Assembly: GCA_010909165.1 (NCBI GenBank)
Contig: MU008155.1
Location: 1,178,001 to 1,242,000, forward strand
Origin: Anthoceros angustus
Taxonomy: Eukaryota > Plantae > Anthocerotophyta
Direction of reading: 5' to 3'
DNA: 64,000 bases
The notes beneath the pieces were generated by a model. It searched no databases and had not been told where the DNA came from. It worked only from the letters and a program-made list of their open reading frames with translations. The translations under genes were made by a program, and so were the position numbers. Below are positions 1 to 20,459 of this stretch, in pieces (positions within the stretch are counted from its first letter, which is position 1; every line of letters starts with the position of its first letter).

Positions 1-1638
1 CTGCCTGCTGGATTGACTGCAGACAGAATGATAACCGATTAATCACCTTGCTCTAATAGCCGCCATTACCATGAAACATTTTCGGAGGCAGTATGGGGAT
101 CAGCTGACAGCGGGGGAGGTAAGTTCCCAGTTTCAATCCGTCATCACCAATGGGTGCTTGAATGCCTGAATCCTAACACTGTCCTCACGACATGACCATG
201 GTCACGACATGGGACACATGCGCAAGTCCAACGGTGCCTCATAATGCCTGCGATTTGGGACGACAAAGACAAGCAGAGGATGAAGGGTTGCGCCCAAAAG
301 GCTGCCTGTTGGGGTATTCGGACCAAAAGTGTTTGGTCCCAGTACCGCAACAGACATGGACGCAAGTCCGCACCCGCTTCGTATCACCTTGGAGCCGGAG
401 GCAGCTGCCATGTACTGCTGGGTTAAGGCCAGACACTTAGGAGCTGAAGCTGGATGATCAAATTTCTCATCGCAGATATTGGTGGAGGTAAGTTCCAGGA
501 CCTGCACTTCCACCGCTACCCAAGATTATTCCCAAATCAGTCCGGTTTATTGTAGAACATGTGACACCTGTTTCAAAACAAATTCCTCCTGACACTTTGG
601 TTTAGGATACCACGTGCTCTCAAGCTTGAATAGTCTACTTACGCTCCATCCCAAGTTGAAACTGTGGATTGCACGGACAGTGGACATTGTGATCTATGCC
701 AAAGGCCAGTGTAGACCCTCGAGAGTTGAAAGTAAGAGAAGTACAGGCCAGCTCTGGGGGCTTGTGTGGTGGTATGCAGGGCAGGTGGCAAGAAATCAAG
801 AGCACATTCGATGGTCATGAAGACGTCGTATATGAGCTGGATTTACCCTCCAGGCTTTCCAGGGAATGGGAGTGGCACGACGAGCTTAACAACGTTAAGC
901 CTAGGAGCATGGGTTGCGAGGAAATAACTCTGTCGGCAGCTGACATCAAGGGTATATTTGATCCTATTGTCAATGAGATCATCCGTCTCATACAACACGG
1001 TATGACAGCACAAGTGCAAGTCATGATGGTCGTCGGTGGTTCTCGGCCTCCCCAAATATGGATTTGATGTCCAGGATTGAGGAAACATTTGCGACGAGGG
1101 TGCAGAAAATTATCAACCCATCTGAGCCAGGATGTGCAATATTTCATGGTGCTGTTCTGATGAGGCTTGCGCCTACTAGTAGCATTATCTCTAGCATCGC
1201 TGTAAGAGTTACGGAATTAGTGCTCGTCGGGAGTTCCGGCCATCAACAGATACGGCTGACAAACTAATCTTTGTTGATGGGGACGCCATGTGTAAGGATG
1301 TGTTCGGCCTGTATGTTCGGAAAGGAATGGAGATGGGAATTGATCATCGTGAGAGCCACATCTACACTCCAGCTTCTCGTCGCGTGAGGCGGATGAGTAT
1401 TGGAATCTACAGCTGCTGCTCAGACGTGAAGCCGGAATATATCACAGGTGTAGGAATGGCTCGCGAAGGGCGTTTTGTCATGGATATAACCGATGGGCTG
1501 GAATTAGATCTTCTCCCACGGATTCGCGTGTCCATGTATTTTGGCCGGTCGTCCATAGAAGTCCAAGCGCAGAGGGAAAATTTTGGTGACACAGAGCTTG
1601 TGGAATCACTTCACATGCATCTTGATCATGATGTATGA
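1..1638 (+). pseudogene. Degraded HSPA12-type Hsp70-like gene (5' end outside window), paralogue of 4772..6866
   Basis: Collinear with the intact copy (PAIWDDKDKQRMK, KVREVQASSGGLCGG, IFDPIVNEIIRLI, RVSMYFGRSSIEVQAQREN) with the same intron donors (~119, ~488). It carries an early stop, several frameshifts, a mutated exon-3 acceptor and a roughly 95-nt deletion after GGLCGG. Confidence 0.85.
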
Positions 1639-2208
1639 AATGGTGTTCCGCGTGTCAAGTGAGAATGCTCCCGAGATGCACCATGCACCGGTGATCCTCT
1701 TCGAAACGAAACTTACTTTGCAGAGTCTATGTAGGTATGCCGTGTGTTTCGGCCTCGAGATGTAGCATCCAGTGATGCCTGGTTCAGACAGCGAACTTTT
1801 CAGCTTCTACGCGCTTGCCATTCAACGGCCATCTTTGCTACTGCAGGATGAAGAGAATGAGCTGCGGGAATTGTGTACCCTAATACGAATTGGCCGTAAA
1901 ACCCTCACTCTGTTTGATGCCAGGTGTAACTTGTAACGCATTCCTACGCTCGCCGTGAAAGGGTTCACAATTATTCTCACACTCCTCACGGTCAGTGTGA
2001 AGTGCGAGCAGGACGTACCTCTACACTCAACGCAACTATGTACACTGTGGCCAAGTATGCTTCTCCTGGCAGCTTAGAGAATTAAGCGGTAGCTTCAGCT
2101 TGCAAGAATTAAGCCGACTTCAGCGTATTTCCTGGGCTCTGTAGCTTTGTATGTTTGTCCACAGGTGACTACAATTGTTGGACAAGTATGCGAAATGGAT
2201 GATCATGC

Positions 2209-2318
2209 ATCCCTTTTATTGCTCAAGAGATGTCTACCAATTTGGCAGGAGTTTGTTTGAGCTTTGACATGATCCCTTTTATTGCTCAAGAGATGTCTAC
2301 CAATTTGGCAGGAGTTTG
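2209..2318. repeat. Local direct repeat, ~63-bp period, 2 copies
   Basis: atcccttttattgctcaagagatgtctaccaatttggcaggagtttg occurs at ~2209 and ~2272. Confidence 0.8.
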
Positions 2319-2653
2319 CTTGAACTTTGCCGTCAACCAGGAAGTTACGTTTCGAACATGCACATCAGCATGGTGGTGATCAGAGATGATGAGCTGGTCT
2401 TTGCCAAGGTCCACACACCGGGCTGCTAAAATATGGCAGTCAACAATTTCAAATGGTGAAAGCTCCACACTGGGACAGCCTAATAACGCTTCGCAACTTC
2501 CAAACACTAACCCAGGATGCGTCTTGGATAAGATGTTGAGTCAACTGTCTTGCAACAAAACATACTGATCACTTGCTATATAAGATTGCTTACAAGGTTC
2601 CTCTGGTTCAAAATTCTGCTCAGCAACAAGGACCTCAAAGATAGCTTGAGGTG

Positions 2654-4034
2654 TCAACCGTCTATTTCATGAAGATAGACCTTAGCTCTGACCACCGCTT
2701 TACCGATGTGAAACCCAGGTACAACCACAAATGCTACTCTCCACACAGAATCAGATTTGTAGCTGGCTGCATCATCCTCGTCCTCCAGAATAGTAACGCT
2801 TTCCATGTATGCTTCATCATATGGACAGCCGACCTTCACCTGCAATATTACAATACAATAGGTGGTAAAGTTACTTGAGCACCTGATGTTCCACTTTGGG
2901 GGGAAATGCTGCGTTTACCTTAAAAATGGTGCAACGTGGATCAAACGAGAAAACAAGCAGATGACAAAGCCAGACATCGGACAGGAGCCGATGAAGCTTC
3001 CTCCGCAGAGCTATGTCCTCTTCTCTGTCACCCGTATCAGGGGCATGTAGTCCAATCCCGTTTCCTATACGGGACATCGATTGTAACACCTGCCGTGCTT
3101 TGGTGTAGCAGAAGGTAAGCAAGCTATCACCACCAAAGGCGCAGCATCCATTTGGTTGACAGAAACATGGGGCTTGGTTCCTTGCAACACTCCGAGGTTC
3201 TGCTGTACTTGTGGCTAGCTCTTCCAACCTTTTCATCCATACATCATTGTCTTGACGCAGCGAGCTGACAAGATCCTTATATTGCCTGTAACTGTCCGTC
3301 CTCCTTTTCTCCAAGTCCATCTCTGTTGGACAACATTCAGGAATCTGAAAATCCTCTGCCTCAAACCCACCGAAAACTATTTCCGACACATACTTCTGGT
3401 ACCAGAACTTGACATCCGACGTTCTTGCAAAACTTATGTCACTTGTGTGGGAAACAAGACCATCCTTAGCACCAGCCTCGTCTGCATCCTTGAAGAGGAC
3501 TTTCCCCTCCCCATCCGTGAACGCTTTAGTGAAGGTGGCCAGGGAATTCTCGATTCTCTGGACTTGGAGCAGGACGTCGTTGGGAGTGGCTACACAATCT
3601 CTGTAGGCACCATACTGTCCGCCACCCTGAACCTCGAGTCTTCCAATCTGCTCCTCCAGGTGCTTATTCTGCTGCACAAGGGCTTCATTCAGGCGTTGTA
3701 GTTCCGACACCCTCCCTATCTGTTCCTCCAGGTGCTTATTCTGCTGCACAGGGGCTTCATTCAGGCGTTGTGGTTCCGACAACCTCCCAATCTGCTCCTC
3801 CAGGTGCTTTTTCTGCTGCACGAGGGCTTCATTCAGGCGTTGTGGTTCCGACACCCTGTTTTCAAATTGAGTCGTAAGTCCAGCAGTCACTGTTTCGGGC
3901 TCGTCCTTCAGCGTCCTTATTCTGGCCTCGCACTCCGGCCAGAGCGAGTCATTTCCAGCATCCAACTCGTGTGAGACCTCCTCTGTGAATGTCCCGCCCC
4001 GAAAGCAGTTGAATGTGCTTGCAACGCCTCCCAT
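2654..4034 (-). CDS. Coiled-coil protein with GIL1/IRKI-type (GrpE-like) C-terminal domain, copy 1; exons 4034-2919 and 2839-2654
   Basis: ATG 4034 (MGGVAS..., Gly2/Ser6). In-frame 79-nt GT-AG intron. IVFGGFEAEDF, VWLCHLLVFSFDP and terminal KVGCPYDEAYMESV...VAFVVVPGFHIGKAVVRAKVYL match the GIL1/IRKI C-terminal signature. Confidence 0.8.
3640..3858 (-). repeat. 72-bp coding tandem repeat x3 (RxSEPQRLNEALVQQNKHLEEQIG)
   Basis: Three near-identical 24-aa units in the coiled coil; the paralogue at 7730..9159 has only one. Confidence 0.9.
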
Positions 4035-4619
4035 CGATTTCCTAATCCCTCTCCAGCACGAACCGAAACTCAGCATGCAACGAGCCCGAGAGAAGCGTCC
4101 AGGCAAAGAGCAGTCAGGGCCCTTCGTTCACACACTCATGAATCTCTCTGTTTGTGTTCAAAGCGAAAGTGCACCCCTGTCAGCTTCTAGAGGTTTCACG
4201 TTCGATCGCCAACGGACGTCCACAGGGACGCGGACGATCGTGAAGCTCCGACGAGCGTACTCAGTACGCTGCGGGGTAGCGTGACAGGAAGGGACAGACG
4301 CACGCTTCTGAAAAGTGGTCATGGGGCGTAACAAGGACCACGCTACGCTCCAAGGCTCCACGGCAAAACCAACCCAGGCCTTACATGCTGTGTTTACGCC
4401 AGCGCACACCGGGTTTACCGCTTGCTCCCGGTGGATCGTACAATTCCCATCGCTCCAACGGGCGTATGCACTTGAGAGTACAGTACATATACAGTAGGTG
4501 GTATGTAGGCTGCGAGGGAATATTTCCGACACGATGGGACAGATGCACGCATTTGAAACGTCGTTGGCGTTAACGCTAACTCCAGGAGCGTAACAAGGAT
4601 TACGCTCCAAGGCTCCACC

Positions 4620-4634
4620 GTTCGCGAAGCTTCA
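4620..4634. promoter_or_regulatory. Perfect three-unit heat-shock element (gTTCgcGAAgcTTCa) in the divergent promoter
   Basis: nTTCnnGAAnnTTCn about 140 nt upstream of the Hsp70-like ATG, followed by a TATA-like tatttat at ~4660. Confidence 0.5.
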
Positions 4635-4771
4635 AAATAACTCAGCAGTCAGGAAACTGTATTTATGACCTCGGAATCTGAAATGTTTGGACGTGACTCC
4701 TCGCAAAGATCAGTCTTGCTTGGGCATTGCTGCGCTCCACATTGGTCGTGACGCGTTCCAGGCGGAGGCAA

Positions 4772-6866
4772 ATGTCGCTGGCGATCCGGGACGCGAGGGT
4801 TGTGGTGGGCCTGGATTTCGGGACCACCTTCTCTGGCTTCGCCTACGCTCACAAGGCGTGCCCTGACGATGTCTACAAGTTTTACGAATGGCCGGATTCC
4901 ACCAGGGGAGGAGGGAGGCCCTACTGCAAGACGGAGACAAGTCTGTACTACGTTGCAGGAGCCCATGTCAACTCCTACGAGCTCAAAGGTTGGGGATGGA
5001 CAGCGCTCGTTGCCTACAGACAGGCGACCCAAGAGGCTACCAGAGCTCGGCGCCTGAGTGAGCTGGGATTGGATGGCACGGTTTCCAGGATTGCTCACAT
5101 TGGTGGCCCGGCGGCGGATGAGGTGGGGCTCTACATTACCAAGTTCAAGCTCCATCTGGCTGGTGAGGACAACGTTTCCAGCAGCGTCGTTGGGCCTCTC
5201 ACTGCCGGAGCACTGCCTGCTGGATTTACTGCAGACAGATTGATAGCCGATTATCTTGGCAAAATAGCCGGCTTCACTATGGAACAACTGCGGAAGCAGT
5301 ATGGGGATCAGCTGTCCGCGCGGGAGGTAAGTTTCCAGTTTCCACGGCTCGTCGCTGGGCGGCTTGAATGCATGAATCCTGACACGTCCTCACAAGTTAC
5401 AACATGACCCACATGCACAGGTTCAGTGGTGCCTCACGGTGCCTGCGATTTGGGACGACAGAGCCAAGCAAAGGATGAAGGATTGCGCCCAAAAGGCTGG
5501 CCTTGTGTCTGGTCCACATACCCCAACAGGTGTGGTGGCAAGTCCGCACCCGCTTCTTATCATCTTGGAGCCGGAGGCAGCTTCCATGTACTGTTGGACC
5601 AAGTCCACACACTTGAAAATGAAGCTGGACGATCAAATTCTGATAGCAGACATTGGTGGAGGTACTTCCCTAGCTATGGATATGCAATGCCATCACCCAT
5701 AATTATTCCCCATTCACTTCGGTACCGGTCCATTCGACAACATAACTGACAACTATTGCATACCGCTCTTCGGACTGCATTTCACGCTTATGCTACATCC
5801 TAATTTGAAACTGTGGATTTCAGGGACAGTGGACATTGTGGTCCATGCCAAGGCCAGTGAAGACTCTCGACTTCCAAAAGTAAGAGAAGTACAGGCCAGT
5901 TCTGGAGGCCTGTGTGGTGGTACTTACGTCGACCGGAACTTCTTCGAGTTTCTATGTAGCCGGATAGGTGGCTTCAGGGATTGGGTCCTCGAAAACCAGT
6001 CCTTACTCTTGAGTTTGCAAGGCCGGTGGCAAAACCTCAAGAGCACGTTCGATGGTCAGCAAGACATCGAACACGTGCTGGATTTGCCTTCCAGGCTTGC
6101 CAGGGAATGGAAGAGGCACGACCAGCTCAACGAACGAAAGCCAAGAAGTATGGGTTACGAGGAACTATGTCTGTCTACAGCTGACATCAAGGGTATATTT
6201 GATCCTATTGTCAATGAGATCATCCGTCTCATAGAGCACAGTATGACATCACAAGTGCAAGTTATGATGGTCGTTGGTGGGTTCTCGGCCTCTCCTTACT
6301 TGATGTCGAGGATTGCGGACAGATTTGCTACAAGGGTGCAGAAAATTATTAACCCACCTGAGCCAGGGTGTGCAATATGTCATGGTGCTGTCCTGATGGG
6401 GATTGCTTCTACCAGTAGCATTATTTCTCGCATCAGCCGTAGAACGTATGGAACTGAAACCACACGGGACTTCCTCCCAGGTACAGATCAGAGGGACAAA
6501 CATTTCGTTGCTGATGGGATAGCCATGTGTGATAATGTGTTCAACCTGTATGTTCAGAAAGGGACGGAGGTGGGAATTGATCATTGCGAGAGCCACGTCT
6601 TCTGCCCAGTTTATCGTGGCCAGAGAACAATGACAATAGGAATTTTCAGTTGCAGCGCAGACTCAACGCCACAGTATGTCACAGATGTAGGAGTGGTTCG
6701 TGAAGGGGGCTTTGAAATGGATCTCGCAGATGGGCTGGACTTAGATCTAGACCGAAAGGTCCGCGTATCCATGTATTTTGGCCGGTCAACAATAGAAGTC
6801 AAAGCGCAGAGAGAAAATTTTGGGAACACAGAGCGTGTGGAATCACTTCGTATGCATTTTGGATGA
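4772..6866 (+). CDS. HSPA12-type atypical Hsp70 (actin-like ATPase), ~612 aa; exons 4772-5326, 5421-5661, 5824-6866
   Basis: VVGLDFGTTFSGFAY (phosphate 1), QWCLTVPAIWDD, LEPEAA, ADIGGGTVD (phosphate 2, joined across intron 2), GGLCGGTYVD and VVGGFSASPYL. HSPA12-like C-terminus (MYFGRSTIEVKA) without EEVD. Both introns are GT-AG and frame-consistent. Confidence 0.9.
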
Positions 6867-7729
6867 AGTGGTGTCTCAAAGGATGCAACGAGCACGAGAA
6901 AGAAGCGTTCATTCGAGAACCAGTCAGGACCGCCCATTCGCACACTAAGTTTATCATCATCATTGATCGCCCTCAGTGGTTCAGACTTGTTGAAAGTACT
7001 TATTGTGCTGCGATGTCGCTGTTGCGTTGCGATGTTAATGGACGAATAATTTCTGGTAACTGTGAACGAAATTTAGCAAGGCAGCTTAGAGTACTTCATG
7101 CTGCTTTTGAGTAGTGCAGTCAGTTCCCCTAATCCTCACTGAGTTCCGACGTTTTGCGTAGCTAACTGATAACTGTAGCTGAACACAGCGGAGAAAGGAC
7201 AAATACCTACTCTGCTGTACTTACAGTCAAAAAATTGAAGTGCATCGGGAAGTCCTTCCCGATTCAAACCTTGTGACTACGTACATTTCAGATGAAAGCT
7301 GTAGGTGGACAACTTTAACACCCACTTGACAGGTCTTCACTTCAGCTGTGGGTGCCAGGAATTTCCTGTTGAAACATGCAGAACAGCATGTGATGATTAG
7401 AGATCGGCTGGTCTTTGCCAACTTGAAGGTCCATACACCGGGCTGCCAAATGTGGGAGTAAATAATTTCAAAGGGTGAAAGTTCCACATAGGGACAGACT
7501 AAAAGAGCTCTAGAAAGATCTTGACTCAGCGTTCCTGGATAAGATCTTGAGTGAACTGTCTTGTATCACTCAACCCAAACCATCCAGACGACCACTTCCT
7601 ATTCAAGATTGATCACAATGTTCCTCTTGTTCAAACCTGGCGAGTGAACAACGAGATTAATCACAAGGTTCCTCTTGCTCAAACTGGTGAGCGACAAGGA
7701 CCTCGAGATAGCTTGAGGTGTCGTCGATT

Positions 7730-9159
7730 CTAGTGTAGATAGATCTTAGCTCTGACCACAGATTTACCAATGCGAAACCCAGGTACGACCATGAATGCTA
7801 CTCTCCACACAGAATGCGATTTGTAGCTGGCTGTTTCATGCTCGTCATCCCGAATGATGACGTTCTCCATGTATGCCGCATCAAAGACAGAGCCAACTTT
7901 CACCTGTAATAACAATAGATACAGAGTTAGGCTAGGTAGCACCTGATATTCCACGTCGCTGGAAATGCTGCGTTTACCTTGAAAATGGTGCAAGGTGGAT
8001 CAAATGAGGAAGCAAGCAGATGACAAAGCCAGACATCGGCCAGGAGCTGAAGAAGCTTCTTCCTCAGAGCTATGTCCTCTTCTCTGTCATCAGTGTCACG
8101 GGCATGTAGTGGCCTCCAGAAGCTCCCAATACGGGATTGTAACATTTCCTGTGATTTGGTGTGGCAGAATGTAAGGAAGCTATCACCACCACAGGTGCAG
8201 CATCCAGTTGGTTGACAGAAACACGTGGCTGGTTCTTCCAACCTTTTCATCCACACATTGCTGCCTTGGGTCATCGAGCTGACAAGCTCCTTATATTTCC
8301 TGTAACTGTCACTCCTCCGTTTCTCCAAGTCCATCTCTACCGAACAAGATTCAGGAATCTGGAAATCTTCTGCCTCAAAACCAAAGAAAACAATTTCCGA
8401 CACATGCTTTTGGTACCAGAACTTCACATCCGACCTTCTCGCAAACTTTATTTCACCTGTAGGGGGAGAAAGGCCACTAGCAACGGCCCCATCTACATCC
8501 TTGAGCACGTTTCCCTCCCCATACATCACCGCTTTGGTGAAGCTGGCCAGGGAAGCCTTGATTATGTCAGCTTGGAGCTGGACGTCGTTGGGAGTGGCTG
8601 AACAATCGAGGTAGGAGCCACAATTCCTGCTTCCCTGAACCTCAAGTCTTCCAATCTGCTCCCGCAGGTGCTCCTTCTGCTGCATAAGGGTGCCATTAAA
8701 GTTCTGCAGGTCCGACATCCTGGCACGAAATTGCCGCTCAAGTTGAGCGGTAGCTGCCTCGTGCTCGTCCTGTTTCTTTTTTATCGCGGCCTCGTACTGC
8801 TGACTGAGCTCCTCCATGCGACGACTCTCCTCTGCTCTCGCCAATGGCGTGACATGCTCACGGAAAGCCGGAAGGCATGTCTTAGAGCCAGTCAGGTTGG
8901 AAACGAGCTCCTCCACGACAGTCACCACACTCCAGTATTCGTCCTTGCTGCGGGCCATCACCTGCCGTGCTCCCCCCGCATTCCATTCTGCTGCAGTGCA
9001 CGAAGTGCAGCCTGTCATTGATTCACCCATCCACTCCACCTCTGACCACAACCCATGTAGCGCGTCATGATGAGCTCTCCTGAACTCCTCTACAACATCC
9101 AACGATGTTGTCACTGTGTCGCACCCATTGCCTGCAAACTTGCTTCCAAAGACTCCCAT
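7730..9159 (-). CDS. Coiled-coil GIL1/IRKI-type (GrpE-like) protein, copy 2; exons 9159-7978 and 7903-7730
   Basis: MGVFGS N-terminus; same intron position as copy 1; terminal KVGSVFDAAYMENV...VAFMVVPGFRIGKSVVRAKIYLH. Confidence 0.82.
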
Positions 9160-9689
9160 TGACTACCTGAGCAATCTCTTCAACACGAACCAAAATTGTG
9201 TTAACTTCATGCGATGTAACGAGCTCGGCAAAACCATCCAGGCAAAGACCAACCAAGAGCTTTCTCGAACTTGAAACAGCTTTACTGCCCGCTTGCGGTG
9301 GAAGGCAAAACCATCTAGGCAACTTCCAACCAAGGGCTTTCTCGAACCTCGAACTTGAAACAGGTTTACCGCCTGCTTGCGGTGGATCAAACGGGTGTAC
9401 CGCCTCCCTGCCGTCGAAGGCATGTGAAGGCACACGCTTTACACCAAACGAAACTACGAACTTCACCATGGAGAGCGTTACTTGAGGTTGGACGTCTATT
9501 CTGCTAGTGAACTCGTTTGACTTTTCTTAACCCCAAAACGACGAATGACTCAATTTCCGACAGACGATATGAAATGGCTTATGTAGCAAGCGTTACAAAA
9601 TGGAAGTCATAAATTTGAAAAATTATTTTATTTCAACGAAACAAATTTTACCTATAAATTTGGAGAAGTTTACTGGTAAACCTCTTGGA

Positions 9690-12700: not shown

Positions 12701-14206
12701 ATGGCGACCGGATTGTGTAATAAGCGTCTCACGTGTACTGATTGTCAATGTCTGCCGCGACTGCCCTTCAGCATGATGTTGTCCCCGGATCACGTGAAAA
12801 CCACTCCATCCTCGCTGGTGGCCAGGGACGCAACGACAGAGGCCTTGTCAGAAGTCAAGGAGATGCTCCAGGATGCAGTGCTGGAGATCATTTGCTTGAA
12901 AAAGAAGCTGGAAGATGAGAGAACGCAGAATGGGGTAGCGGAAGACAGATGCAGACTGCTGGACCAGAAACGACGGCATTACAAAGCAGAGTGCCACATG
13001 CTGGAGTACGAGCTGGAGGCGCTCAAATTTCAGCAGCAGACGGAAGCAGGTGAGTGGCAGAAGGAGTGGAAGGAGGTCCATAACGAATGCGAGATGCTGC
13101 GGACCAAGATCTACGCTCTTCAGGCCGGCACTAGCGTGATTCTCCACCCTGAGCAAGAGCCCTTGTCGGGGCAGAGTAATTTGGCTTCTCCTGAGGCACT
13201 GAGTAGGCAGCTTACTGTCCACTCCGGTGCCTACTCCTTCTCGGTGAATACTTTTCAGGTTATGGCGAACAGCATAATGTTTCGGCTGGCCGGCTTCAGC
13301 AGGTCATTGATTCGTGCGCTTGGTCACCCAATTGAGATTGCGCAGGACGCTGCATGTGGAGACGGTCTGTCAGCAGGACTGTCGGATGGGAAGTATGCCA
13401 TGTACCAACGCGTTTCAGAGATATTGTTCAAAGGTTTCGAGGACGACAGCTTCACCTTCCCAGAATGCCTGATGCCGGAGGTGAACAGAGAGAAGAGACG
13501 GGTTATCTATTTTAATCAGGTCGGGGAGCTGGGGACCGTAGAGAATGAGGAGCAGGTGATGAGGAACTTCCAATACCTGCTGAAGTGTGACTATGCCGTC
13601 TCAAAAACAGAGCCCATACGTTTGGTCCCCGAATTGTGCCCCAGCAGCTGCACCAAAGTGGGGCTCTGTGGTTGTGGACGAGCAGCATTCATGAACTTCT
13701 GCCGAAGGGAACTTCACAGGCTTGCCAGGTCCTTCAAACCTGAGCATCCTTGGTGGAGTCCTGTACGAGAGGCAGAGGCAGGAAGCAACAAGTTGCCTAA
13801 ATTGCCCTGTTTATTGTTTATGAAGCGACTTCTTTCGTTGCTGGCATATCTGTGGCGGGCTCACCTTGTCTTTTTGACGTTCGAGCAACCTTGCAGAATG
13901 TTTAAAGTGAGTTCACCTCCTTAATCCGTTGTGAAACTTTGCAGAATTTGAAGCATACTCGTCGAGGGCATGAAAGTTGGAAACCAGGTGATGTTGCAGC
14001 AGTTAAGCTTGAAAACTGAAATTCACTAGAAAGTGGTGCTGGCTGGCCTGCAGGTTAAGAGGGGGTGTATCTTCGACCCCGCCTACATGGCTTCTGCCTA
14101 TGAGGATCCCAGACACACTTCCCAAGGAGTAGTCGAATATATTATTATACCAGGATTTTACATAGGCAACTTTGTTGTCAGAAGCCAAGTTTACGTGCGT
14201 GACTGA
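12701..14206 (+). CDS. Divergent coiled-coil GIL1/IRKI-type (GrpE-like) protein, copy 3; exons 12701-13906 and 14054-14206 (start uncertain)
   Basis: Long coiled coil, YQRVSEILFKGFEDDSF, LWRAHLVFLTFE; same intron position (FK|V); terminal VKRGCIFDPAYMASAYEDPRHTSQGVVEYIIIPGFYIGNFVVRSQVYVRD*. Confidence 0.8.
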
Positions 14207-17789: not shown

Positions 17790-20459
17790 TTACTCTTCTT
17801 CCAGATGTTTCCTGTGAACTTGCGCACACGCTGTGCTACAGTAGGAGTAAGAGTACCTTGTGAAAGGCACTTTACCCGACAGAGCGATCCCACAGTAAGA
17901 GCAAGGATCTACCGAAGACTGCGGCTGTGAACCTCCACTTCCGCCAGCAGTGTTCAGGCCTAAAGCTCGAAGTCTCCGCTCCGCGGCAGCAGCTCGCATC
18001 TCCCGCTCCAAAGCTTGCGCTTTCAGCAGAGCCTGAAATAGCCCAACCAACTTAGACGTTGCCAGAGAGTAGTCCAAAAATCTATTGGGGAGGGACTAAC
18101 CAGGTCAAATGCCACTGGCTTTTGGGCAGCAACTCTTTTGTCCTTCCCAGATCCATGCCGGACCTCTTTCGTCGCTGCAGCTGCTAACTCCGCTGCTGCC
18201 TTCGCCTCAGCCTGTTTCAAGTCCACAGAGTTTTGATGTTGCGTAGATAGGGGAATGCAGCAGTTCTGCATGGCGTTCTTTTTTACTAGTGAATTTGGAA
18301 ACTTTCTGTATGGCATTCTGCCCCGCTGGAAGACAAATGCGTAAATTTTCCCCAATCCAAAAAAAACGCTGCGTAAACAAACCTGAGCAGCTTCTTGGGC
18401 TTTCTTCTGCTTCTTCAGCTCTTTCATCTTCGCTTTCCTTTTCGCGTCCTTCTCAGCCTGCAAAGACATGAGGATATCGCATATTGAACTGTCGATGCCA
18501 AGATACTCTCAACACATTATTGCCTACTGCGTACCTGCTTCGCAGACTGAGCAGCCTCTATCTCATCTGTCAGCGGGCTTGGGACATTGGCCGCATGCCA
18601 GTCCCACCTGTCTGGATACTCGGCCATAAATCTGCGGAAAACATTTCTCGTTTCCTTGTTCGCAGCAAGGGAGTATGGAGTTCGACCTCTGCCTTCTTTG
18701 GCACAAGGGTCGGCTCCAGATCTTAGAAGTTGCAAAACGGAATCTGTATTCCCAGATTTTGCTGCTTCATGCAGGGCAGATAGGCTCCGATCACTGAGAT
18801 CTGCTGTTTCCTGCAGTTCCCCATTGTTCCTCGTCTCACTTTGCTCTGCTTCTCTTTCCGACACTTGTATAGGCTTGTCAGCTCCTGTGCCAACCTTCAG
18901 TGGCACCTTTTTTTGGCTCACAGCTTCAACTTTTTCTGTCTTTGTACCTCCTTCCAAACTACTGGGCCCCTTGTACTCCAAAGACGCAAGCATTTGAAAG
19001 ACTCTTCTTGCTTCTTTGAAGGTAGGCCTGCGTGTTGTGAAGGGGATATTTCGTACTCTCCGATCGCTTCTGCTCAGTGCAGCATCCTCACCACCAAAAA
19101 AAGACTGACTGTCGGATGAAGGAGCATGGACATATATTATAGAAGCTTCTCGAAGATAACTCTTCCATCGGGAGAGCAAATCTTGAATGTCCTGCACGAC
19201 ATGAGAGGTGTCACAGATTTGCAAGGTCAGCATCCTAGCAGAGCAAATTCCTGATCACCCATCACAATCAGCTGGCCCAGTCAGCATGAACAAGGCAACC
19301 TAATTACCTTCTGAAGAGCCTTTTCATTGTAACGTCGAAGAGAGGCACCTGCAGATTTTGGTGCTCTGCCAGAGGCATCCTTCGTGGACTGTCTTCCCCC
19401 AGCTTTGGCTCTCACCACATATCTGCAAACCATTTAGTAAAAAAGGAGCAGGCTTCCGAAATCTCAACCAGGGGCAGCACCCTGTCATAGAGGGCTCCAA
19501 CAAGATAGAAGAAACTACCTGTGAAAAGTCTGATGTGCAAGAGCTTCTCCACTTACAATGTTCCCTACGACACCAGCAAAATGCCCTCCGTTGGCAAGCA
19601 GAACCACCCACACTTGTTGAGGCTCAGGGCCCTTCAGAACTCTCAACCTCCGTTCAAGCTCTCCATCAGAAACCGACAGCCCAGCCGGGTCGTCACCTGC
19701 ATATCCTTTTTCTCCTTGCAGAACTTCCTTCTCGGTGACCAGCACAGCACGCCACACAGACACCACTTGCCCTGAGTTTTGCAGCAGGAACGAAATGTGG
19801 ACTATCCTGTTGACACCCAATCTAGGTTTCCTTTCTCCCTCATCATCGTCAGAGGCATCAGTGTCAGATCCTGAAATGCTGGACACATCATCGTTGTCAC
19901 GCTGATGTTCGTTCTGCGCAAAAATCTCGAATTCCTCCTCACTTAACCCCGCTTTCCCATGTACCTTCCGCTTGACCTGCAGAGCAACAAGAAACTCAAC
20001 CACATAAACACATTCGCCTATTGCAACGCTGAAACAACATGCTCCATCATGCCGACACTAGAAACTGAGCTCCACAACACGACTTACGTTAAGACGATGG
20101 AAATCAGACTTGAAATGGGACCTCTGCTGCCCCAGACTCAAAAAAACGGAGTCACAGGTTATACATGTCCAACGGCTCATCCCATCCCCCTGCTCCGCTG
20201 CCCCTGACACTCTTTCCGACTCCTTTCTCGCCCCATCAACGCCCACTACACCGAGCTTCTGCTCCTGAGCTGCCACCGCGTTGTTCTCATCATCTTGCTG
20301 CTCCTGCTCTTGCTCAGTGGGTGCTAATCCTGATGCTGCAGCTCCTAATTCTGGAGACAGACTCTCCTCACGATGTACCACCGCAGAATCAAAGAAATCA
20401 TGGCTCACGGTGCATAGATCATTGGACCTGGCAAGCTGATGCTGTGAATTGCGCCCCAT
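17790..20459 (-). CDS. ANKZF1: Ankyrin repeat and zinc finger protein ANKZF1/Vms1 (ribosome quality-control peptidyl-tRNA release), ~7 exons
   Basis: C2H2 [10 protein letters not shown]...[13 protein letters not shown]; VLRF1 domain GGHFAG...[18 protein letters not shown]...[11 protein letters not shown]; [12 protein letters not shown]; ankyrin LHEAAKSG...GADPC; C-terminal treble clef CSYCG...[18 protein letters not shown] introns at 20087-19977, 19518-19423 etc. Confidence 0.93.

Follow-up and report, generated by a model that had tools for sequence, protein, structure and literature searches.

We analyzed a stretch of 64,000 nucleotides from Anthoceros angustus (Anthocerotophyta; contig MU008155.1, positions 1,178,001 to 1,242,000; hereafter the window) and found near its start two tandem copies of a gene pair, which encodes an HSPA12-type Hsp70 ATPase and a coiled-coil (CC) protein of the GIL1/IRKI family. 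On balance, we favor the view that this orphan Hsp70 has the CC protein as its own GrpE-like regulator of nucleotide exchange, probably in the cytosol, as suggested by structural models and by analogy with bacterial GrpE. In the proposed mechanism, the two proteins would form a chaperone module in which the ATPase contributes a complete actin-fold nucleotide-binding domain (NBD) and a non-canonical C-terminal domain, and the CC protein contributes a long helical stalk, followed by a ~190-residue helical domain and a GrpE-related beta-wing at the C-terminus. The CC protein would bind the ATPase across the top of the nucleotide cleft, with the beta-wing against the loop corresponding to DnaK residues 26-34 at the IA/IB junction and the adjacent helices against lobe IIB. 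As for GrpE acting on DnaK, docking would open the cleft and speed or gate the exchange of ADP and ATP, and the stalk and the N-terminus would set the place and timing of this action.

HSPA12-type Hsp70s are widespread in eukaryotes, and we know of no dedicated cofactor for them. The GIL1/IRKI/COST1 family affects gravitropism, autophagy and endoplasmic reticulum shape, and to our knowledge no biochemical mechanism is available for it either. A conserved pair of the two would connect these gaps, namely the function of HSPA12 and the mechanism of GIL1/IRKI/COST1, and would make both testable at the bench, with the CC protein as a candidate cofactor of HSPA12-type Hsp70 that is open to direct testing. 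A 2026 review lists the function of HSPA12 as "presently unknown" and raises the question of why eukaryotes did not keep a cytosolic GrpE (PMC13580251). A text search of the literature found no paper that describes a pairing of an HSPA12-type Hsp70 with a GrpE-like CC protein. The same search found nothing that joins GIL1 with GrpE or MIEAP with HSPA12, and DUF641 and GrpE were co-mentioned once, incidentally.

The first-pass annotation of this DNA had proposed that the pair was duplicated as a unit, in the order Hsp70-like pseudogene (forward), CC1 (reverse), intact Hsp70-like gene (forward) and CC2 (reverse). Both proposals were borne out. Within positions 1-9500, a unit of ~5.2 kb is tandemly duplicated with 73-93% identity between the copies, and each unit pairs an HSPA12-like Hsp70 gene (+ strand) with a CC gene that converges on it (- strand). 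A direct-repeat search returned 18 repeat families at a constant offset of 5.0-5.24 kb (73-93% identity), which span both genes and the spacers, and the gene models reproduced the order. The homology suspected in the spacers downstream of the CC genes (2380-2650 and 7400-7730) was confirmed by alignment, with 83% identity over 254 nt, and the motif GGTTTACCGCYTGCT..CGGTGGATC is indeed common to both upstream regions (4410-4437 and 9362-9388). The CC introns of the two units are 78% identical. CC1 and the intact Hsp70-like gene are also head to head as predicted, with the Hsp70 ATG at 4772 and candidate ATGs of CC1 at 4076 and 4034.

Copy 1 of the Hsp70-like gene, whose 5' end lies outside the window edge, was rightly called a pseudogene. 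Its exon 3 could be read by tblastn only in three different frames (702-1040, 1040-1207 and 1204-1623), with frameshifts near 1040-1060 and 1200-1210, and exon 2 contains a further shift between 303 and 329. In addition, ~31 codons are deleted after "SSGGLCGG" in its open reading frames (ORFs), and the matches of the Hsp70-like profile to this copy are fragmented.

Splice sites were read from the DNA and then compared with public reads, of which a single run (X1) covers the stretch. The RNA label of this run is a guess, and its contigs, spliced at GT..AG borders, suggest that it is RNA. The intact Hsp70-like gene, CC1 and CC2 were all present as spliced contigs, which show transcription in one sample and do not allow expression levels to be ranked. 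At 100% identity, these contigs omit exactly the predicted introns of CC1 (2840-2918) and CC2 (7904-7977), as well as the predicted introns of the Hsp70-like gene (5327-5420 and 5662-5823), whose exons are 4772-5326, 5421-5661 and 5824-6866. CC1 consists of exon 1 (4106-2919), a 79-nt intron (2918-2840) and a last exon (2839-2654) that encodes the GrpE-like head, and its transcript contig extends to 4118. Likewise, CC2 consists of exon 1 (9159-7978), a 74-nt intron (7977-7904) and a last exon (7903-7730). Other X1 contigs match exon 1 of the Hsp70-like gene (4800-5160) at 90-95% and then diverge, one of them at a depth of 222, indicating that other, more highly represented members of the family are transcribed elsewhere in the genome.

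The window genes were searched exon by exon, and the full-length fold and the complex were modeled with an intronless neighbor pair from the liverwort Calypogeia. In an alignment with 22 relatives, the intact Hsp70-like gene keeps the motifs DFGTT, EPEAAS, DIGGGTVD, VGGFSASPYL and PGCAICHGAV across its three exons, and the kept classes are phosphate-1, connect-1, phosphate-2, adenosine and connect-2. Homologues were found down to an E value of 3e-97, with a best identity of 47%, and the relatives of named source are from liverworts, mosses, lycophytes and ferns. The Hsp70-like exons of the window, searched singly, stayed below the cut-off of PF00012 (HSP70). The orthologue from the moss Ceratodon scored 41.3 bits against this cut-off of 20.6 and matched the NBD structures of DnaK and BiP with E values of ~1e-5 to 3e-5. 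The ESM Atlas model of the same orthologue could be superimposed on a chordate HSPA12A cluster with a template modeling (TM) score of 0.84 over 556 residues, and an Atlas search gave a feature score of 0.98 to a large mollusc "HSPA12A-like" cluster. "HSPA12-type" is therefore a fair name for the window ATPase, with the overall likeness tested on the Ceratodon orthologue. Relatives of the ATPase carry DUF8340 (PF27033), and the C-terminal domain is non-canonical. The ATPase starts only nine residues before the first NBD strand, and thus no targeting peptide is visible.

Both CC genes of the pair belong to the family defined by GIL1_IRKI_C (PF24994), which their last exons matched with 57.2 bits (CC1, E = 1.7e-15) and 55.3 bits (CC2, E = 6.4e-15) against a cut-off of 27. 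A profile built from the local and linked CC copies retrieved 410 relatives among 1.84 billion representatives; PF24994 was present in all 68 aligned family members and DUF641 (PF04859) also in 28 of them. A word-index search with the main exon of CC2 returned no homologue, and the relatives came from the exhaustive profile search. The main exons of CC1 and CC2 had no Pfam match, including PF04859 up to an E value of 1, and PF04859 was also absent up to E = 0.1 from a third copy in the window (CC3) and from the linked copies of Calypogeia and Ceratodon. Membership of the window CC genes in DUF641 was accordingly rejected.

CC1 and CC2 share 57% protein identity, that is, 43% of the residues differ, and they vary in stalk length. 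The stalk of CC1 contains three tandem repeats of 24 residues (72 nt, 92-95% identical) and that of CC2 one copy (8648-8721), so that the stalks differ by 48 residues owing to repeat number. The long helix of bacterial GrpE is a thermosensor, and by analogy this difference in length could matter. The N-terminus of CC2 reads MGVFGSK (9159-9139, - strand), which is an N-myristoylation-type motif, and CC1 has MGGVAST at an internal methionine (4034-4014, - strand) 14 codons past the first in-frame ATG. Both MG starts fit the N-myristoylation consensus, with Gly2 and a small residue at position 6. Neither the Calypogeia copies nor the moss protein P0049 have the motif; it is the N-terminal MGxxxS of the copies in this genome that suggests, by analogy, that the CC proteins might be anchored to a membrane.

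The head of the CC family was modeled with AlphaFold2 from the last 127 residues and 61 sequences without templates, with a mean predicted local distance difference test score (pLDDT) of 83.6. The model consists of a long helix followed by six short strands. We searched similar structures among 350,542 PDB chains with Foldseek, and the 12 best matches were all GrpE, from Thermus, Escherichia coli, human (GrpEL1), Geobacillus and Mycobacterium tuberculosis, with a best E value of 6e-3 and a probability of 0.97. The matches that followed were unrelated, with E values above 2. VIA-align, which is independent of Foldseek, placed GrpE of three organisms at the top among 48,161 chains (Z of 5.3, 5.0 and 4.9), and the head was superimposed on the GrpE beta-wing with a root mean square deviation of 2.5-4.2 Å over 50-54 residues. 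In a second comparison, seven GrpE entries had Z scores of 5.5-3.2, and the next chain had 2.4. In the PDB, the modeled head thus resembles the C-terminal beta-wing of GrpE and nothing else. Modest scores would be expected for a domain of 55 residues, and the exclusivity of the GrpE matches is the striking part.

Sequence profiles pointed in the same direction. We compared the CC family by hhalign with a diverse GrpE profile of 13 sequences, made from 12 plasmid- or chromid-borne grpE genes and E. coli grpE, and obtained a probability of 74%, a P value of 2.9e-5 and a score of 37.2 over 47 columns (GrpE 145-192). Among the controls, 200 column shuffles had a mean score of 10.1 (standard deviation 2.0, maximum 18.5), the reversed profile scored 12.5 and an unrelated family 16.7. 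The alignment pairs "rG..F.p.YMesV....kVgF.V.PGFrvg..vIk..VYL" with GrpE 145-192, in the same register as the structural alignment and as the pattern first seen by eye. In a lax Pfam scan, two of the 61 members matched GrpE (E = 0.074), and no other family besides GIL1_IRKI_C had more than a single matching member. GrpE clusters were among the nearest ESM Atlas shapes to the CC protein. BLASTP of the CC protein against E. coli GrpE found nothing, and phmmer of the window exons against PDB sequences gave chance matches only. The profile likeness, although well above its controls, is only suggestive.

The head fold had been set beforehand as one of the points on which the proposed relationship should be judged, and by Foldseek, VIA-align and hhalign the modeled head was GrpE-like. 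The broader suggestion of a GrpE architecture held in part. The head fold and its pattern stood, whereas the protein as a whole is not a plain GrpE: the full-length model of the Calypogeia CC protein (pLDDT of 78.6) shows a 75-residue helix, about ten shorter helices (residues 203-392, ~190 residues) and then the head. In these models, the likeness to GrpE is confined to the head and the preceding helix.

The complex was modeled with the full Calypogeia ATPase and residues 195-455 of the neighboring CC protein as a monomeric fragment. The interface score (ipSAE) of this pair was 0.72, compared to 0.00 for the best of three controls. In a mostly microbial calibration, 51 of 78 solved complexes attained the mark applied to this score, as did 2 of 108 mismatched pairs. 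The runs shared at least 89% of the contacts, of which there were 116, and the partner had a pLDDT of at least 80. By alignment with E. coli DnaK, the predicted contacts of the ATPase correspond to DnaK 26-34 with a neighboring insert, to 246-285 in lobe IIB and to 331-356 in lobe IIA. In the model, lobe IIB touches the CC helices 211-219 and 253-258, and the loop on the IB side touches CC residues 202-207 and the head residue 447. GrpE binding depends on the DnaK loop 28-33, and P151, I157, M159 and R183 of GrpE are interface hot spots. By the hhalign register, these hot spots presumably align with the Calypogeia CC contact residues 412-422 and 444-448. In the GrpEL1-mortalin and DnaK-GrpE complexes, the beta-wing lies on lobe IB and the short helices lie on lobe IIB (PMC11685456). 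The predicted complex scored above its controls, and the predicted contacts lie where GrpE binds DnaK, at the IB loop and lobe IIB. The model supports binding rather than showing it.

Binding of this kind could also serve another purpose. The main alternative, which we consider unlikely but regard as the most serious one, is that the CC protein binds but is an anchor, adaptor or inhibitor of the ATPase rather than an exchange factor, for example by tethering it to a membrane or a client or by holding the NBD open and inactive, with the head as a docking device only. The helical domain of ~190 residues and the stalk of variable length (three 24-residue repeats versus one) exceed what exchange would need, the N-myristoylation-type start of CC2 and the large predicted interface fit this alternative, and for relatives in flowering plants, roles in scaffolding or regulating other proteins have been described, as for COST1 with RHD3 (PMC13189119). 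However, the predicted contacts span the IB loop and lobe IIB, just as those of GrpE do when it opens the cleft, and any protein wedged at IB/IIB would be expected to alter nucleotide affinity.

The recurrence of the pair in other plants argues for a partnership. Relatives of the ATPase were looked up in annotated assemblies, and the DNA retrieved for them was searched with the profiles of the two families. At 5 of the 10 loci with DNA, a CC gene adjoins the Hsp70-like gene, namely in this window, at two loci of the liverwort Calypogeia fissa, at one of the moss Ceratodon purpureus and on a Logan contig (L106), so that the linkage in other genomes called for by the first-pass annotation was found. 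The linked genes are 1-3 kb apart, the window has two such pairs, and four linked loci are head to head. In C. fissa, one locus (L001) has a CC gene, a head-to-head Hsp70-like gene and then a CC pseudogene, in the same order as in the window, and at the other (L012) two CC genes are present, one of them 1.7 kb from the Hsp70-like gene and head to head with it. The C. purpureus locus (L002) comprises an Hsp70-like gene, a CC gene and then a head-to-head second Hsp70-like gene, and the Logan contig (5.4 kb), which belongs to the window gene's own clade, carries a CC head exon, an Hsp70-like gene and a second Hsp70-like gene. Given the modest size of both families among tens of thousands of genes, adjacency by chance would be expected in well under 1% of cases. 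A quick maximum-likelihood tree joined the linked ATPases of moss and liverwort in one clade (88 in the Shimodaira-Hasegawa-like approximate likelihood ratio test, SH-aLRT) and the unlinked moss paralogues in another (99), indicating that the linkage is old and was lost in some branches. The window ATPase grouped with three other sequences in this tree, whose deep branch order was poorly supported.

It is improbable, in our judgment, that the two genes are co-regulated or co-duplicated neighbors with no physical partnership and that the head came to look like GrpE by convergence or very remote descent with no shared function. The modest structural scores (Z of ~5, Foldseek E of 6e-3) would fit this explanation, as would the many Hsp70-like paralogues that have no CC neighbor and the 7 of 44 blind neighboring pairs that passed the complex test in its calibration. 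However, three independent signals agree: GrpE was the sole PDB family matched, by two aligners; the profile alignment was in the same register, ~13 standard deviations above the shuffles; and the genes are neighbors in a moss and a liverwort as well as in this plant, with the linked moss and liverwort Hsp70 genes in one clade. The contrast between the score of the complex and its controls points the same way.

The first-pass annotation had also described the pair as fast-evolving. The ratio of nonsynonymous to synonymous substitution rates (dN/dS) between CC1 and CC2 was 0.54 for the main exon and 0.28 for the head exon, at dS values of 0.3 to 0.6. The description thus comes down to values of ~0.5, which, with none above 1 and with 0.28 in the head exon, indicate relaxed evolution and not positive selection. 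The least probable of the explanations considered is that the locus mainly serves immunity or conflict, with tandem birth-and-death as the main feature and with a diversifying ATPase that, together with its partner, senses or counters pathogens: the tandem duplication with one pseudogene and one extra CC copy, the dN/dS of the CC main exon, the parallel duplications and CC pseudogene of Calypogeia and the massive expansion of HSPA12 genes in bivalves (PMC13580251) would suit it, but the head exon shows constraint, neither a sensor nor an effector domain is present, and such a role is compatible with exchange regulation rather than an alternative to it.

Several observations weigh against regulation of nucleotide exchange by the CC protein. 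On the structural side, Z scores of ~5 and TM scores of ~0.3-0.45 are modest for a domain of 55 residues, the full-length CC model found no GrpE-like match (Foldseek gave helical noise only), and a helical domain of ~190 extra residues stands in place of the short two-helix segment of GrpE. On the sequence side, no CC member reaches the gathering score of PF01025 (best E of 0.074), the CC family profile retrieved nothing from PDB sequences, and hhalign against a narrow enterobacterial GrpE alignment gave nothing. The ipSAE value is the model's own confidence and may partly reflect recall of solved DnaK-GrpE complexes, and it was obtained with the Calypogeia pair and a monomeric CC fragment, not with the window proteins. 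Angiosperm GIL1, IRKI and COST1 are known for other partners, and we found no link to Hsp70 or GrpE in the literature on characterized flowering-plant GIL1/IRKI members. Finally, no CC gene was found within 10 kb at 5 of the 10 loci, which are from Diphasiastrum, Sphagnum (two) and Ceratodon (two further loci).

Weak structural neighbors of a CC protein (P0047, model m2f6b3328f8c7) included a domain of the chordate "mitochondria-eating protein" (Pfam MIEAP), with TM scores of 0.42-0.66, and clusters from Mucoromycota and Ascomycota. HSPA12-like clusters were observed in Mucoromycota, Basidiomycota and Chordata. The partnership of CC proteins with HSPA12 could predate land plants, which at these TM values is only a lead. 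A more far-reaching and doubtful proposition is that the whole land-plant GIL1/IRKI/COST1 family is the "missing" cytosolic branch of GrpE, which would have descended from GrpE, would originally have been paired with HSPA12-type Hsp70s and would still act through Hsp70-type ATPases in flowering plants. This branch might extend to the fungal structural neighbors and to the MIEAP domain of animals. If true, this would give HSPA12 a cofactor and the DUF641 proteins a biochemical mechanism.

The features of the locus are collected in Table 1.

Table 1. Features of the duplicated locus and the adjacent CC3 gene in the A. angustus window
Feature	Position	Strand	Evidence
Hsp70-like pseudogene, copy 1	1..1640	+	tblastn pieces, broken ORFs, fragmented profile matches
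CC1, GIL1/IRKI-family gene	2654..4106	-	Pfam PF24994, splice sites read from DNA, transcript contig
Three tandem 72-nt units in the CC1 stalk	3640..3857	-	Repeat family D4, copies 92-95% identical
Divergent promoter region common to CC1 and the intact Hsp70 gene	4107..4771	.	One perfect trimeric heat-shock element
Intact HSPA12-like Hsp70 ATPase gene, 612 codons	4772..6866	+	Motifs, homologues, transcript contigs
Convergent spacer, Hsp70 gene to CC2	6867..7729	.	Homologous to 1640-2650; 73% identity over 777 nt
CC2, second GIL1/IRKI-family gene	7730..9159	-	PF24994, transcript contig
CC2 upstream region	9160..9500	.	Shared motif, internal 51-nt repeat (families D16 and D17)
CC3, third GIL1/IRKI-type gene	12701..14206	+	tblastn, ORFs, family profile matches

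The perfect trimeric heat-shock element TTCGCGAAGCTTC lies at 4621-4633, ~140 bp upstream of the ATG of the Hsp70-like gene. Three matches to it occurred in the 64 kb (the others at 19142 and 35125), compared to ~0.9 expected. The element was not found in the equivalent Calypogeia and Ceratodon promoters, and given this lack of conservation in the liverwort and the moss, heat regulation is not claimed. The spacer downstream of CC1 contains a 63-nt unit in two tandem copies (2209-2334, 92% identical), which has no counterpart in the second unit. A scan with the family profiles found no further Hsp70 partner beyond the upstream region of CC2. CC3 is 28% identical to CC1 and CC2. Its main-exon ORF (12701-13924) contains a putative splice donor, and the head lies on an exon of its own at ~14039-14206, which matched the family profile at 2.5e-12. 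No Hsp70-like gene adjoins CC3.

Local duplications of CC genes have occurred in parallel in C. fissa, where a broken, near-identical CC copy lies downstream of the Hsp70-like gene at one locus (L001, 13231-14722) and two CC copies are present at the other (L012, 3332-4444 and 10232-11266). Unlinked Hsp70-like paralogues of Ceratodon (L008, 3307-5652, and L006, 7189-7914) adjoin other stress genes: one has an HSP90 gene ~4.3 kb upstream, and another is head to head with a gene for a zf-AN1 stress-associated protein.

The window ATPase shares with HSPA12A/B an Hsp70 NBD with intact phosphate and adenosine motifs, a non-canonical C-terminal part and a tendency to lineage-specific expansion, as in bivalves, but it represents a plant lineage that is ~40-47% identical to its nearest bryophyte, fern and lycophyte relatives. 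The CC proteins share with GIL1, IRKI, COST1 and other plant DUF641 proteins (PF04859 plus PF24994) a C-terminal GIL1_IRKI_C domain well above the Pfam cut-off and the overall layout of a coiled coil plus helices, whereas the window copies and the Hsp70-linked moss and liverwort copies have no DUF641 match. With BAG, HspBP1/Fes1 and Hsp110, the CC proteins would share the proposed job, i.e. opening lobe IIB of a cytosolic Hsp70-type NBD, by analogy. However, those factors have unrelated folds, and none of them surfaced in the CC fold searches.

In reviews of 2025 and 2026, GrpE-like factors are confined to bacteria, mitochondria and chloroplasts, and a cytosolic GrpE is noted as not retained (PMC12987570, PMC13580251). 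The CC head has the same beta-wing fold as GrpE, Mge1, GrpEL1 and CGE1 (PF01025), in register, with "G..F...YME.V...V.PGF....V...VY" corresponding to "G..FDP..H.A...V...GY....R.A.V". In both, the head is preceded by helices and a long N-terminal helix, and for the CC protein the model of the complex predicts contact with lobe IIB of an Hsp70-type NBD and with the loop on its IB side. On the other hand, the CC proteins lie below every curated GrpE sequence threshold, have a helical domain of ~190 residues instead of the short helix pair of the four-helix bundle, show no organellar targeting peptide and are paired with an HSPA12-type ATPase, not a canonical Hsp70. We did not class the CC protein as a member of the GrpE family, because it departs from GrpE in two defining features, the sequence threshold and the helix layout. 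Instead, we regard the CC family as a divergent GrpE-like branch with a new class of partner.

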